Origin: Podarcis filfolensis
Taxonomy: Eukaryota
DNA length: 64,000 nucleotides
Direction: 5' to 3' (one strand)
Assembly (NCBI GenBank): GCA_964270895.1
Contig: OZ185439.1
Shown here: positions 35,101 to 41,100 of the stretch, in pieces
How positions within the stretch are numbered: position 1 is the stretch's first letter
How the letters are laid out: each line of letters begins with the position of its first letter
Notes under the pieces: model-generated
Told to the model about the DNA's origin: nothing
Database searches by the model: none
The model's input: only the letters and a program-made list of their open reading frames with translations
Position numbers and translations under genes: made by a program

Positions 35101-38100
35101 ACCCCCCCCCCAGAAGGCTGACCCAGAAGGGAGTGTAGACCTTGGGTTCAGAAAGATCCTTCCTCCCTCTACAACCAGACCATTTCCATGGTGGTATTTT
35201 TTGGAGCCTCTCCAGTTATGGAAGCAGCAACTGGGAGGCTCCATGCAAGAGTCCTGCTCATACTGACATTTCCCCTGTTCGATACCTAGCACAAGTTGGA
35301 ATTGGCATGGAGAATAAGTGGCCAGTCCACATGTCTCTGCTCTTCAAAGCAAAGGGCCTTACGCTGTCATGGTGACTCAGCCTGTCTAAAATCAGTCCCT
35401 CTGCACTCCGATTTGGCACAGGAACATGCATCTTATTGGGACAGGATGCATCTTATTACTCTCTGAGCCAGTCGAATGCTCAGTCTCCAAGTTCCACTGC
35501 ATTTTAGAAAAGAGTCTTGAGAGGAAGGCCAGCCCAGAACACTTTGCTGCTGCAGGTGANNNNNNNNNNNNNNNNNNNNNNNNNNNNNNNNNNNNNNNNN
35601 NNNNNNNNNNNNNNNNNNNNNNNNNNNNNNNNNNNNNNNNNNNNNNNNNNNNNNNNNNNNNNNNNNNNNNNNNNNNNNNNNNNNNNNNNNNNNNNNNNNN
35701 NNNNNNNNNNNNNNNNNNNNNNNNNNNNNNNNNNNNNNNNNNNNNNNNNNNNNNNNNNCCCACTTTATCACTACCCTAAGGAGTCTCAAAGCGGCTCACA
35801 TTCTCCTTTCCCTTCCTCCTCCACAACAAACACTCTGTGAGATGAGTGGGGCTGAGAGACTTCAAAGAAGTGTGACTAGCCCAAGGTCACCCGGTTCACC
35901 AGATTATGAGTCTACCGCTCTTAACCACTACACCACACTAGTATCCCTTTCTTGGCATCGAGCGAAGGGGACACAAGCTATTTTCCAGCTGATATGATTG
36001 GCACTTCTTTCGAAGCCCTATCTGACCTCTGGAACATCCAAACAGCTGGGACTGAGTGCCCTCTCCCACTCTGCTGTCACTGCAATATGAGGTTGTGTTT
36101 TGGCTGAAGTGCACTTTTTTTTGCACCTTAGTTGATTAGTCAAATGAGTATTAACTTATGCTAACTTATGCAAACTTCATCCTGAAATAAAGAATAGCTG
36201 TGGGAAGAAAACCTTATTTGTGGTTGTTTCCGATGAGGCATGCACATATTTTAGCAGGCACCCTCTTGCTATCAGCATCGCTCCCTCCTGTGTGAGAGAA
36301 AAAGAGGAGTGCATTTTCTATGAGCCCTGAGTGGTGCTGCCAGACCATCTCCATTATGTCCTAGTAAAGCTGCAATCCTAACCCCATTTTATCTGGGAAT
36401 AAGCCCTGTTGAAGTAAATGGGATTTATTTCTAAATAGACATGGTTAGGATTGCACTACAAAGCTGTCCTACTGGCTTAGGCCACCAGCTAAAACAAAAA
36501 TGCTTGCTAATCAGCATCAGCATCTGTTCACTGTTGAAAATGAGATGATAATGCTGCATTTAACTTTCCAGAATTTTTTATTGTATTGTTGCATATTTGT
36601 ATGATTTTTCTGAGCTGCTCAAAGAACTCTATGGGGTGGGGTGGTCTGACCTATATACAGTGATTCCTCGGGCTACAAACTTAACTCGTTCTGGAGGTCC
36701 ATTCTTAACCCGAAACTGTTCTTAACCTGAGGCGTGCTTTTGCTAATGGGGCCTCCCGCTGCTGCTGTGCCGCCAGCGCACAATTTCTGTTCTCATCCTG
36801 GGGCAAAGTTCGCAACTCAGAGAAACTACTTCCGAGTTAGCGGAGTTTGCAACCCAAGGTACCATTGTATATAAAAAACAAATACAGAAAGTACTGGACT
36901 AGTTCCTTTGTGTGCAGACTGCATTTGCTGGTTATTTTTGACACCACAACCTTTTCTACTTCCAGTGGTAACAACAACAGCACTTTATAGGAAACACAGC
37001 AGAAGTCCAGGACTTTATCACTGTAGCAATTTGGCAGCAATGTCCTCTTCCATCCAAAAAAAGAGAGGAAAAAACAAAGCCCAGAGTTCATGCTCTTTTA
37101 AACTACAGTGGTTTGTGATGTATTTATTTAGTTTTGTAAAGCCTTCCATGGTAGGAATAGAGAAATAAGCTGTCCAGTACAGTGATACCTTGGGTTAAGT
37201 ACTTAATTCCTTCCGGAGGTCCGTTCTTAACCTGAAACTATTCTTAACCTGAAGCACCACTTTAGCTAATGGGGCCTCCTGCTGCTGTCGCACTGCTGGA
37301 GCACAATTTCTGTTCTCATCCTGAAGCAAAGTTCTTAACCTGAAGCACTATTTCTGGGTTAGCAGAGTCTGTAACCTGAAGTGTATGTAACCCGAGGTAC
37401 TACTGTATTACAGTCTGTTACTTAATATCATTATTTTACTTATACTGGTTCTCCAGCTTCCTTTGTAATTAACTCTTTACAGGGCTGAAGCAGTGTGTTC
37501 CTTTTGTATTCTTACAAAGATTAATAAACCTAGTTTGTTTGTTTTTAAAGCCTCTCACCCCACAGCTGCCCCAAACTGCACGGATATTTCTTATTTCAGA
37601 ACACTTCGGCCGCCGAGTTCATATTCCAGATGAGAAGCCATCTAGAGGCACAAAAGGGGATGGTGATGCTCCATACGGCATCGGAAGAAGCAGGTTGCAA
37701 GCTTTTGCCGAAGTAAATCACCTTCATCCCAGTCCTAACCATAAGTACTTGCTCCCTGGGAAGCATCGCGTTTTTGAAGCTGCGCAATTACGAACGATTT
37801 CTCTTGATTTCAGCGGGGTTTTATTCGGACGTCATTCTCGACCTCTGCCAAAATCCCTTGGCTGCGGTCCCGGGAATCCCATGAACTCCCAAGCAAACAT
37901 GCACGGATCGTCCTGTTTGTCCTGAGCGGCCCAATATATACACGGATCTTTGGAATTTTGACCTAATGGTTCATTTCCAAGCGCTCCCGACTCAACTCTC
38001 TTCCTTCTAGCTTCGCCGCGCAAGATCCCCCCCCCCGACCCAGATGTGGAGCCCGGGCGGGCAGATGTTGCGCCTCTGCGCCCCAGCAGCCCCCGCTCGG

Positions 38101-41100
38101 CTCGCCCTCTTCCTCCTCCTCCTCCTCCTTCTGCCGCCGCCGCCGCTTCCTGGTTCTCTCCCGCCGGCGGCGCAAGAAACCCCATTGTGCGCGGCGGCGG
38201 CTGCTGCAGCCACCGCCCAGGCCGAGGCCCAGCCCCACCGCCGGGCCCCCCTTCCCGCTCCGCCAGGGAGGAGAGAGCGGCGCCGAGGCCTCTCCGAGCG
38301 AGCCGGCCCCATGGAGATCCCCCCGTCGCACTACCCGGCCACGCGAGCCGCCGGCGTGGTCGAGAACTACATCAACTACCAGCACGGCAGCCCCAGCAAG
38401 ATTTTCGGCGTGCGGGAAGTGCGCCAAGCCAGCCGAGAGGTAAGCGGGGCCGGGGATGGGAAGGCGCAGAGGCGCTGCTTTCCTGCGCGCACGCTTCCCT
38501 GGGAAACAAAAAAACCCAAAACACCCCCAGCAAGCCTTATGGCACCCTAAATGCTACCGCAGGGCTCTTCCTTGGCTTCGCTGCTGCAAAAGGCTGCAGC
38601 AAAAGTCGCGCTCCCCAGATTTAACTTGGAAGAAAGGCCCGTTTAACGTGGCGGGACCTGCTTGCAAGTCCATCTGCAAAGCATCTGGGCGCCTAAATAA
38701 AAAGGCGCTCGCAGAGTCTCCGCTGCTTTCTCCTCCTCTGAGCAACTTCTCTGCAAAGCTTGATTCCTAAAAGGGTTCGAGGCTGAAGACGCCAATCACT
38801 GCAGAGGGAGCAAGCGCGCGCACAACACCCTCTTCCCCATCTCTGCTACTTTTTAATCCAGGCGAGCGGGGCTCATCCTGGCCCGCGAGAGGCGACACTT
38901 TCTTTTCAACAAGGCGCACAAAGAGACCAGGGGCTGCGCCCCAAGCGATCGCCATGATCGGCAACGACAACAGTTGTTGCTATAGCTTTCTCCTCCCTTT
39001 GTGCGCCACGTGGTCCAGCAGCGGCAAAGCACCTGCCCCATCGATCGGTAAAAAACGAAGTCCACAGAGTTATCTCGCCTATTCAAGGCGGAGTAAACTC
39101 GTTGCCTTAACCCTTCTTGTTCCAGGCTTGCCTCTAGTGCCAGTCTCTCCCATGGGCGGAGGGGAGAATCTATCACTGCTGCATTATAGGGATAAGCTGA
39201 AGAACCAGTTGCACTAAAAACAAACAGAAAGCCTGGTTGATCCTGGCAACTGTTTGCTGTCCACAAATAAGAGCGCTAACCTTTCCGAAACAGGCACACA
39301 CCTGCAGAACCCCACCCCAAATCGTAGCTGGTAGAGAATGCCCCAGAAGTGTCTTTTGGACGCTTAACTGCACTACAAGAATTCTCAACACGTCATAAGC
39401 ATGTTACATCCGTTCCAAAGTAGAATGATGCTTTTTATCCACCTTTCATCTCAGCAAATGTTCTAAATAATGGGGTACTTCGAGGCAGCTGGACACTGCT
39501 TTTAAACACTGGGCACTAGCTAAAGTTAAGCATTTTTTTACACCTCGCTGATTTCAGCAAGGGAGTGTTAAGCTTACCTACTGAGTTCAGTGGGCTTTAA
39601 ACATGCTTGGCCTTAAAAAAAAAAAAAAACCTTCCACAGCAAGTTAACTGTTTGTTTTTGATACGGATACTGAATACATAAAGAATACCCTCATATTGTT
39701 AGGGTCCCTGGCAAGTCCTCAGAAGTCGAAGTAAGATAAACAACATGTACTCTCTTTGTACTTCAGGAAATTCCAGGTGTTGGGCACAAATATCGCCTGA
39801 AGTTTGCAATGGAAGAAGAACTTCAGAAAGTAAGTCCTGCTCCTTTGTTTGTTGTTAGTTGGGATTCATTTACGGCAAACCTCAAGAGGGTAAAGAGTAG
39901 ACTGTATCACTGCCTGTATGATTCCTGAATGAGATTTCTCCAGCCATAAACTACCTGGAAACCACTTCAAAAAGCTGAGGCTGGTTCTAGGACAAGTCGA
40001 CAACACCACATTCTTAGGCTGGTTTCAACAGCCCCTTGGGCACCCTGATCCTAAATTCATTTATCAAGATGCTGCCAGGAGCCTAAAACTTCCATGCAAC
40101 ACGCAATAAAAAGCGGGATAGGTTCCTGGCAGAACTCTGGGTTATCACCTCAAAATGAAAATCTGAGAGACTATATTGCTTAGATTATAGATTCATATTC
40201 ATCACTCTACGTGTATGAATCAGCCATTACAAACAGAACTGTGATAACCTCATGTGTCGCATCAGTCTTCAAAGGGGTAAGAAATCAAGTATGTACAGAC
40301 TTGGAAGGGACCTTAAAGACCACCCTGCCAACACGGGAGCCCCACGACCACATTACAATAAGGAACTGCATGCAAGCCACTTATTTGTAGCAGAAGCATT
40401 CGTTGCTTCTAGAATATAAAACTTCAAACAGAGTTTATTTTAACCCTTAAAAAAATTGGTCCCTGACCTTGACACCCCCCCCCCCAATTTCATATATGCC
40501 CCTTGAAATAATGGGGTTGCATTGACACAAAACCGCATCTTGCTAATGGATCTGGTACCCTCTGACGGAATATCTAAACAAATGCTCCTGCTGTTTTTGC
40601 ATAACAGTTCACATCACCAAGGAGCAGACAGCACACTGCAGCTCAAATCACCCATCGCAGCAGGAGTGGGGAACCTTTTTCGCCCCAAGGGCTGCAAACC
40701 CTCCTGGGCAACCTTCTGAGGGCCACATGCAAAAATGGGTGGAGTAATGAATGCAAATTTTACCCTTGTACTTTAGGCAAGTTTCAACACAAACTCACAT
40801 ACACCCCTCTCTGTTCAGACAATCAAGAGGCATTATCAGAGTTCAAAGACACATTTGAGCCAGGCAAAAGCACTTTTTTTGGGGGGGGGGTTAAGCAAGA
40901 TGAGAGGTGTTGCCCAAGGAGAGTTCTGATGGCAAAACAGAAAGATCTAGGCCTGAAGTTCCCTACCCCTGCATTATAGGATGATGCCACAACAGGGGGA
41001 GATGCAATGTTCAATAGCAGAGCAGCTGAAGAAAAGGGGAAGAGAGATAATACACATAACACTTCTCTTGAATAGAGAGCAATATACAATTATTCTGAGC

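Follow-up and report, generated by a model that had tools for sequence, protein, structure and literature searches.

A probable secretory signal on the long form of squamate latexin, apparently gained from 5' flanking DNA

Latexin is, to our knowledge, the only endogenous protein inhibitor of the vertebrate A/B metallocarboxypeptidases, which are enzymes that are secreted or stored in granules. A stretch of 64,000 nucleotides from the lizard Podarcis filfolensis (GenBank assembly GCA_964270895.1, contig OZ185439.1), which in its whole length is called the window here, contains an intact latexin gene, LXN, on the plus strand, and two ATG codons lie in frame upstream of its canonical start at the MEIPP motif. 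The initial annotation, made from the sequence alone, proposed on this ground that lizard latexin may be a secreted precursor with a signal peptide, a propeptide and a furin site. Does this extension encode a real signal, and if so, where did the signal come from? We consider it likely that squamate latexin carries, on its long form, a real signal for the endoplasmic reticulum (ER) that is specific to squamates and was gained from 5' flanking DNA.

The N-terminal extension and its distribution

The two upstream ATGs, at 38044-38046 and 38065, are in frame with the MEIPP ATG at 38311, and re-reading of the sequence agreed with the initial annotation in that no stop codon stands between 38044 and 38311. 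The open reading frame (ORF) is bounded upstream by an in-frame TAG at 38008-38010, on the plus strand like all the other elements of the extension. The first ATG (MWSPGGQ) has the weak context cccagATGt. The second (MLRLCAP) begins a basic n-region at 38065-38100, recognised by protein alignment and with a net charge of +2 by count, which is followed by a hydrophobic, Leu-rich h-region at 38101-38133, whose mean Kyte-Doolittle hydropathy is 3.69 over 9 residues. After it come a c-region PPPPLPGS at 38134-38157, defined by alignment and containing the ETS-like block GCTTCCTGGTTCT at 38145-38157, and an Ala/Pro/Gln/Arg-rich linker at 38158-38310, which was delimited by alignment, is predicted by AlphaFold2 to be disordered and holds RRERRR at 38269-38286. 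The Leu-rich core and this basic cluster were both found where they had been reported. The product would have 311 aa if translated from 38044 or 304 aa from 38065, and the short form has 222 aa; the 311-aa product shares 96.8% identity with the latexin of Podarcis muralis, which has 307 aa.

The GC content of the extension region is 73-76%, and Tandem Repeats Finder (TRF) reported (CCT)8 at 38106-38129 and (GCCCAG)3.8 at 38215-38237. An open frame alone is no evidence here, because stops are rare in all three frames, and the significance of the extension appears only through comparison between species. As a separate observation, the Leu (CTC), Pro (CCG), Ala (GCG/GCT) and GCCCAG repeats (38098-38157 and 38191-38237) differ in length from those of close relatives, and even among the runs of one relative; the length of the signal's core may be polymorphic.

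A search with skink latexin gave a set of 75 proteins, in which the squamate entries are nearly all 268-312 aa long. The latexins of tuatara, turtles, crocodilians, birds, mammals and amphibians have about 222 aa and start at MEIPP. The roughly 50 non-squamate latexins begin at this motif, a few of them with short unrelated N-terminal additions that have no hydrophobic core. A homologous N-terminal extension of 51-93 residues is found in 22 squamate species, namely five geckos, three scincoids (skinks and a cordylid), Podarcis, Rhineura, Varanus, three iguanians, seven snakes and the species of the window. Their layout is common: a Met, usually a basic n-region, a Leu-rich core, a c-region like L-P-A-S, a block A-Q-A...P-A-D-L-S-A-x-P-G-R, a variable tail and then MEIPP. 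In at least 90% of the 22 proteins a Met aligns with the second ATG of the window, and Podarcis, Rhineura, Varanus, Pogona and the five geckos also have a Met at the place of the first (38044). The double Met M-x-x-x-G-Q-M is common to geckos, lacertoids, Varanus and Pogona.

Because the composition of the extension is too biased for deeper database matches, similarity was measured against composition-preserving shuffles. The extension peptide of the window resembles those of lizards, from geckos to Varanus, with z = 5-25, and none of 500 shuffles reached the observed score. The similarity to snakes is weaker (z 2.7-4.5), and for Sceloporus the shuffle test detected no composition-corrected similarity. 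When 5.8 billion proteins were searched with the extension alone, Rhineura (E = 1.9e-13) was the sole match besides Podarcis, and a search of the ESM Atlas returned only latexin clusters.

A possible counter-example to the restriction to squamates was a mammalian ORF from the Logan transcripts (P0027, 319 aa), which runs 97 residues into the 5' untranslated region (5'UTR). It was ruled out, as its extension is unrelated, has no hydrophobic core and is without signal features, and it illustrates, as a control, how a spurious extension looks. RefSeq and UniProt already list the long squamate proteins, as automatic models that in many cases bear the name 'latexin-like', and short isoforms are annotated for Heteronotia and Candoia. 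In a full-text search of the literature we found no paper on a signal peptide of squamate latexin, or on latexin in squamate venom or secretions; by that search the leader has not previously been described, though the long proteins are annotated.

Reading frame, signal-like features and transcripts

Genomic loci of Eublepharis, Hemicordylus, Tiliqua, Sceloporus, Crotalus and Pantherophis, together with those of turtle and crocodile, were compared with the window. The anchors ATG, GCTTCC, GCCCAR, GGGAGG and the MEIPP ATG are in constant phase with one another throughout the eight squamate DNA or RNA sequences, despite the fact that all the distances between anchors differ among these sequences. 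The extension is in frame across the 22 squamates, in which at least about 20 independent changes of segment length have occurred, all of them multiples of three; this count is a conservative minimum, as the anchors were misplaced in six species. Against a close relative represented by read data (organism A), the ORF shows indels of 3, 3, 6 and 3 nt, with the indel rows at 38191/38192 and 38305/38306 each counted once, compared with 1, 1 and 2 nt just upstream. The frame in relatives, to which the initial annotation had pointed as a check on its proposal, is thus kept both across squamates and at close range. Lineages differ in the codons that they use for the Leu core (CTC, CTG, CTT, TTG and CTA). 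Variability in the extension falls from third (0.49) to first (0.42) to second codon positions (0.35); third positions are also the most variable in the canonical exon (0.34), where the first (0.23) and the second (0.22) are nearly equal.

Hydropathy, charge and the -3/-1 rule were the criteria for likeness to signal peptides. In each of the 22 extensions there is a stretch of 9 residues whose mean Kyte-Doolittle hydropathy lies within 2.46-3.80. Counted from the annotated N-terminus, it starts 12-26 residues in for 21 species; in Liasis, where the gene model begins 33 residues before the conserved Met, it starts at residue 49. Nineteen species have an n-region with a net positive charge, and in three the n-region is neutral. 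By the -3/-1 rule, the c-regions of geckos (SVQA↓E) and snakes (LVLA↓D) contain textbook cleavage-type sites. In the AlphaFold2 model of the Podarcis muralis protein, residues 1-85 have a predicted confidence (pLDDT) of 39-59, with only a short helix at residues 21-25, and the domain at residues 86-300 has a pLDDT of 94-98. Foldseek matched this model to 1WNH and 2BO9_B, the mouse and human latexins, with a TM score of 0.98 and a root mean square deviation (rmsd) of 0.9, and gave fetuin-B and cystatin E/M as distant matches. According to the model, the inhibitor fold with its two cystatin-like subdomains is intact below the extension.

The segments DNFG, STEDT and EIIPW and the sequons NCT, NVS and NST, which the initial annotation had listed, were found in the downstream exons. 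These sequons are uninformative on secretion because they are equally common in leaderless taxa: NCT and NST are equally conserved there, and NVS occurs in half of both groups. Sequons confined to squamates appear more telling for secretion, in a suggestive way. K-N-L-S is present in 11 of 24 squamates and N-G-S in 7 of 23 (snakes), and neither occurs in the 21 other taxa; the window has KNLP in place of K-N-L-S.

Evidence at the RNA level came from the Logan contig L009 of a skink-like species (1139 nt), which is fully spliced and contains a whole long ORF of 299 aa behind a 5'UTR of about 92 nt that has no upstream ATG. Its 5' end lies inside the motif CCACTTCCAAG, which is kept about 80-90 nt upstream of the ATG (37968-37982 in the window) and is common to the window, Hemicordylus, Eublepharis and snakes. 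A promoter- or initiator-like block with an ETS-like core, TTTGACCTAATGGTTCATTTCCAAG, occupies 37957-37982 on the plus strand and is kept in Hemicordylus, Eublepharis (as CACTTCC) and snakes, and the transcription start site (TSS) of LXN may, to go by these motifs, lie near 37973, close to the initiator that the initial annotation had tentatively placed at 37971. In three of four runs, lacertid RNA contigs begin upstream of 38044 and continue into the splice between exons 1 and 2, and a TSS downstream of 38065 is unlikely in this species.

Two more conserved non-coding blocks were noted in the promoter, upstream of the putative TSS, namely AAGCAAACATGC at 37889-37902, common to Hemicordylus and Eublepharis, and TTTGACCTAATGG at 37957-37969, common to Hemicordylus. 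In one run (X1), a 3693-nt RNA contig ends on 37746-38223 (contig positions 3221-3690), and its first 3220 nt match nothing in 37500-37745; the AG at 37744-37745 is preceded by a pyrimidine tract and CTAAC. This contig may represent an upstream exon, or a read-through from the neighbouring gene RARRES1 to LXN, spliced in at 37744-37745. If this splice is real, upstream ATGs at 37881, 37899 and 37966 would be added to the leader.

The upstream AUGs have weak contexts, in lizards cagAUGu and in snakes gagAUGc. None of the 22 species has lost the MEIPP AUG (in Anolis sagrei it is shifted); its +4 nucleotide is G throughout, and several lineages have a purine, A or G, at -3. The pattern of a weak upstream and a better downstream context fits in seven of seven loci, and no ATG lies between the starts, as composition predicts (0-0.35 ATGs expected from shuffles). 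The pyrimidine that had been reported at -3 of all three ATGs of the window, 38044, 38065 and 38311, is C in each case. The leaky scanning that the initial annotation derived from it is plausible: the weak upstream context and the G at +4 of MEIPP speak for it, and the ATG-free interval is simply what composition leads one to expect.

Origin of the extension and alternative explanations

The turtle LXN has in-frame stops, one of them 20 codons upstream of MEIPP, and no upstream ATG. The crocodile gene is open for more than 66 codons upstream of MEIPP, also with no ATG. A block, GCTGCTTCCTGCTT, is invariant in a ten-sequence alignment that includes both and corresponds to 38145-38157 of the window, where it encodes L-P-G-S (blocks of this type lie at about 2389 in L002 and about 2446 in L007). 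Its phase with respect to the start codon is unchanged in turtle and crocodile, and its CTTCCTG, which has the sequence of a candidate ETS site (CAGGAAG on the other strand), is coding in squamates and non-coding in those two. The codons just before the block read CTG TAG CGG CTG in turtle, compared with CTG CTG CTG CTG in skinks. From these alignments it appears that the extension is partly old 5' flanking or UTR DNA, and that the ATG and the run of Leu codons are new in squamates. Because turtle and crocodile have homologous DNA without the ATG (in turtle with stops), we take the extension as a gain and not a retention, and the simplest history would be a single gain in stem squamates after their split from tuatara, whose state is taken from a 222-aa protein model only. 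The initial annotation had suggested that reptiles retain or regained a secreted latexin; the signal-like extension is there, but it is confined to squamates and was gained, not retained. A leader retained from RARRES1, or acquired from it by gene conversion, was ruled out, as blastn and tblastn gave only low-complexity matches (poly-Leu and poly-Ala). The LXN leader is unlike that of RARRES1 and aligns with flanking DNA of turtle and crocodile, which points to an independent origin.

We suggest that GC-rich 5' flanking or UTR DNA would have become coding in stem squamates when it acquired a run of Leu codons and, upstream of MEIPP, an in-frame ATG. At its N-terminus the long product would have a classical ER signal, made up of a basic n-region, a Leu-rich core of 9-12 residues and a c-region of the type L-P-A/G-S; behind it would come a disordered linker of 45-60 residues and the unchanged inhibitor domain. 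Ribosomes that start upstream would make an ER-targeted precursor, to be recognised by the signal recognition particle (SRP), cleaved and secreted, and the secretory pathway is where the A/B metallocarboxypeptidases inhibited by latexin occur. The MEIPP ATG has the better context, and the interval between the starts contains no ATG; cytosolic latexin without the leader would therefore probably still arise, either through leaky scanning or from transcripts that begin further downstream. A fuller version of this scheme is put forward only tentatively: it has latexin targeted to both destinations, with a signal that arose de novo from the 5'UTR or promoter of latexin itself; the Leu-Pro of the c-region would then be encoded by CTTCCTG, an ancient promoter motif of ETS type, and new sequons would have appeared afterwards in several lineages.

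It is also conceivable that the region is an untranslated 5'UTR or promoter that is open by chance, in which transcription factor sites (CTTCCTG and CAGATG) are conserved and for which the long proteins are artefacts of gene models. A number of observations speak for this, or at least weigh against a secretory signal. The caution in the initial annotation about stop-poor, GC-rich DNA and a CTC repeat was justified, as 62% of dinucleotide-preserving shuffles of 38047-38310 are without an in-frame stop, the (CCT)8 repeat lies in the core, and stops are absent from the other two frames as well, both in the window and in five of six other squamate loci. Conservation is in part a matter of the DNA itself, because the L-P-A codons coincide with the ETS-like motif that is also kept where it is non-coding, and both upstream ATGs of the window lie within an E-box-like CAGATG. 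The long proteins are mostly automatic models that use the most upstream in-frame ATG, and P0027 shows that spurious read-through extensions do get called. The 5' ends of the lacertid contigs cannot place the TSS, because they are scattered (37780, 37856 and before 37500), the contigs are unstranded, and LXN lies antisense in an intron of GFM1 (mitochondrial EF-G), whose pre-mRNA could extend the contigs upstream. Many indels of the extension fall in triplet repeats, which favour changes in multiples of three by themselves. The extension evolves fast, with an NG86 dN/dS of about 0.35-0.9 (near neutral in the linker), and of 1.8 between Crotalus and Pantherophis on few changes; against the close relative, five to six of its seven substitutions are nonsynonymous and one is synonymous, and in the linker, too, nonsynonymous changes prevail. 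The c-region of the window is Pro-rich and has no clean small-x-small site, LPG↓S being the best by rule of thumb. Constraint on single residues is weak, and the linker carries little information. Signal peptides and disordered linkers usually evolve fast with their physico-chemistry conserved. Slippage in triplet repeats could explain a part of the indels, not all of them. An untranslated region fails to account for the 20 or more length changes in multiples of three, the constant phase at four anchors and the Leu residues kept through codon changes. Moreover, an in-frame ATG is present in 22 of 22 squamates and none of such kind in other tetrapods, snakes and Sceloporus retain the ATG without the E-box, and the extension of P0027 has no hydrophobic core. 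We hold this explanation to be distinctly unlikely, and the long latexin and 'latexin-like' models of squamates are probably not artefacts.

If the extension is translated, its hydrophobic segment might stay uncleaved as a signal anchor, giving a type II membrane protein with an extracellular inhibitor domain, as proposed for RARRES1/TIG1. The sequence of hydrophobic leader, linker and domain in exon 1 of RARRES1 (9210-9470) is similar, the window has no canonical -3/-1 site in its Pro-rich c-region, and Sceloporus has a longer hydrophobic stretch. Most cores, however, have Pro at their flanks and only about 9-13 residues, which are few for a membrane span and point rather to a cleavable signal; the sites of geckos and snakes are good ones, and there is no homology to the RARRES1 leader beyond low complexity, so that an anchor seems unlikely to us. 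The prepro-latexin of the initial annotation, in which a furin cut at RRERRR would remove the linker and release mature MEIPP-latexin, draws on the R-E-R-R at 38272-38283, 8 residues before MEIPP, and on basic clusters (RRRGL, RSRGL and RPRRGL) that recur there in some lizards. The canonical R-x-K/R-R motif was found in only two of the 22 species, the window and Pogona; Podarcis muralis has RSERRR at this place, and no such motif is present in Eublepharis, skinks, iguanids or snakes. Cleavage at the motif of the window would leave 8 residues in front of MEIPP, and AlphaFold2 gives no folded prodomain, the low-confidence segment giving no sign of packing on the domain. The furin site and the propeptide are therefore unsupported, and processing of this kind is very unlikely. 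A translated but tolerated appendage, or another targeting signal such as a mitochondrial one, might keep its frame because a frameshift after a used AUG would abolish latexin. This agrees with the fast-evolving linker and with an Arg/Ala/Leu-rich n-region without acidic residues, which is loosely presequence-like, but the Leu-rich core, with a mean hydropathy of at least 2.46, is uninterrupted in all 22 species throughout the history of the clade. For SRP recognition, an uninterrupted Leu-rich core is a feature of signal peptides and not of mitochondrial presequences. Of all the explanations considered, we find this one the least probable. A real ER signal on the long form of squamate latexin is the explanation that we prefer.

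The locus and comparison with known systems

LXN has six coding exons in the window, all on the plus strand and with AG/GT borders throughout. The canonical coding part of exon 1 (MEIPP...ASRE) spans 38311-38439, with the donor GT at 38440. Exon 2 lies at 39767-39829, with GT..AG joints in four RNA runs, and exons 3 (41263-41440) and 4 (42843-42979) are also defined by RNA-contig joints; exon 5 (43803-43865) and the coding part of exon 6 including the stop codon (46209-46307) were placed by their AG/GT borders. The GT..AG joints of introns 1-3 were seen in RNA contigs of four runs from three studies and two related species. The ORF of exon 1 matches the Pfam LXN profile (PF06907) from profile position 1, beginning at residue 92 (E = 1.3e-08), and the latexin of Podarcis muralis covers profile positions 1-216 of 217 (E = 2.5e-87). 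The profile starts at the E of MEIPP, and the extension lies outside it.

Exons of GFM1 flank the entire gene on the minus strand, one for EFG_IV at 33969-34157 and one for EFG_III at 47264-47410, both identified by Pfam domain matches. A single GFM1 intron therefore contains LXN in antisense orientation, with RARRES1 upstream of LXN, and the loci of gecko, skink, iguanid, snake, turtle and crocodile have LXN nested likewise. Exon 1 of RARRES1, on the plus strand, encodes the hydrophobic leader, a run of nine Gln and the start of the latexin-type domain, and its donor GTAAGG begins at 9471. Within LXN intron 3, the depth of RNA contigs rises to about 2400 at 42228-42621, compared with about 100 in exons, and many contigs diverge into unlike sequence at 42421/42422, 42456/42457 and 42517; this segment looks like a transcribed interspersed repeat. 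The window also contains two runs of N, at 31119-31318 (200 bases) and 35560-35758 (199 bases).

The closest known system is the mammalian latexin (1WNH; 2BO9 chain B), an orthologue which likewise has six coding exons, lies antisense in a GFM1 intron beside RARRES1 and adopts the same two-subdomain cystatin-like fold (TM 0.98, 65-66% identity). It starts at MEIPP without a signal peptide, whereas the squamate gene adds 51-93 signal-like residues. SignalP finds no signal peptide in human LXN, which is released into the medium along an unconventional and unknown route (PMC6435711). One reptile order thus seems to resolve the topological mismatch of latexin by means of a classical leader, and squamates offer a natural comparison for the extracellular function of the inhibitor, with a ready-made secreted form to test. 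They would also provide a clean and datable case in which a targeting signal came from GC-rich 5' flanking DNA by the gain of a start codon, with the pre-coding state of the signal DNA still visible in turtle and crocodile.

The tandem paralogue RARRES1/TIG1 has the same order of hydrophobic leader, low-complexity linker and latexin-type domain, but its leader is not detectably homologous to that of LXN. In genes with dual localisation by alternative initiation, one or more weak upstream AUGs are followed, with no AUG between, by a kept downstream AUG with G at +4, and the new N-terminus bears the targeting signal; squamate LXN has the same arrangement, and both starts would be used in the scheme suggested here. 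The latexin passages of a survey of the cystatin superfamily mention no leader of this kind (PMC2784779). In the cystatins, fetuins and kininogens, inhibitor domains of the superfamily stand behind classical signal peptides (PMC2784779), as we suggest for squamate latexin. The leaders of those proteins are ancient and have no long linker, whereas the leader of squamate latexin is specific to one lineage and stands on an otherwise leaderless member of the superfamily.

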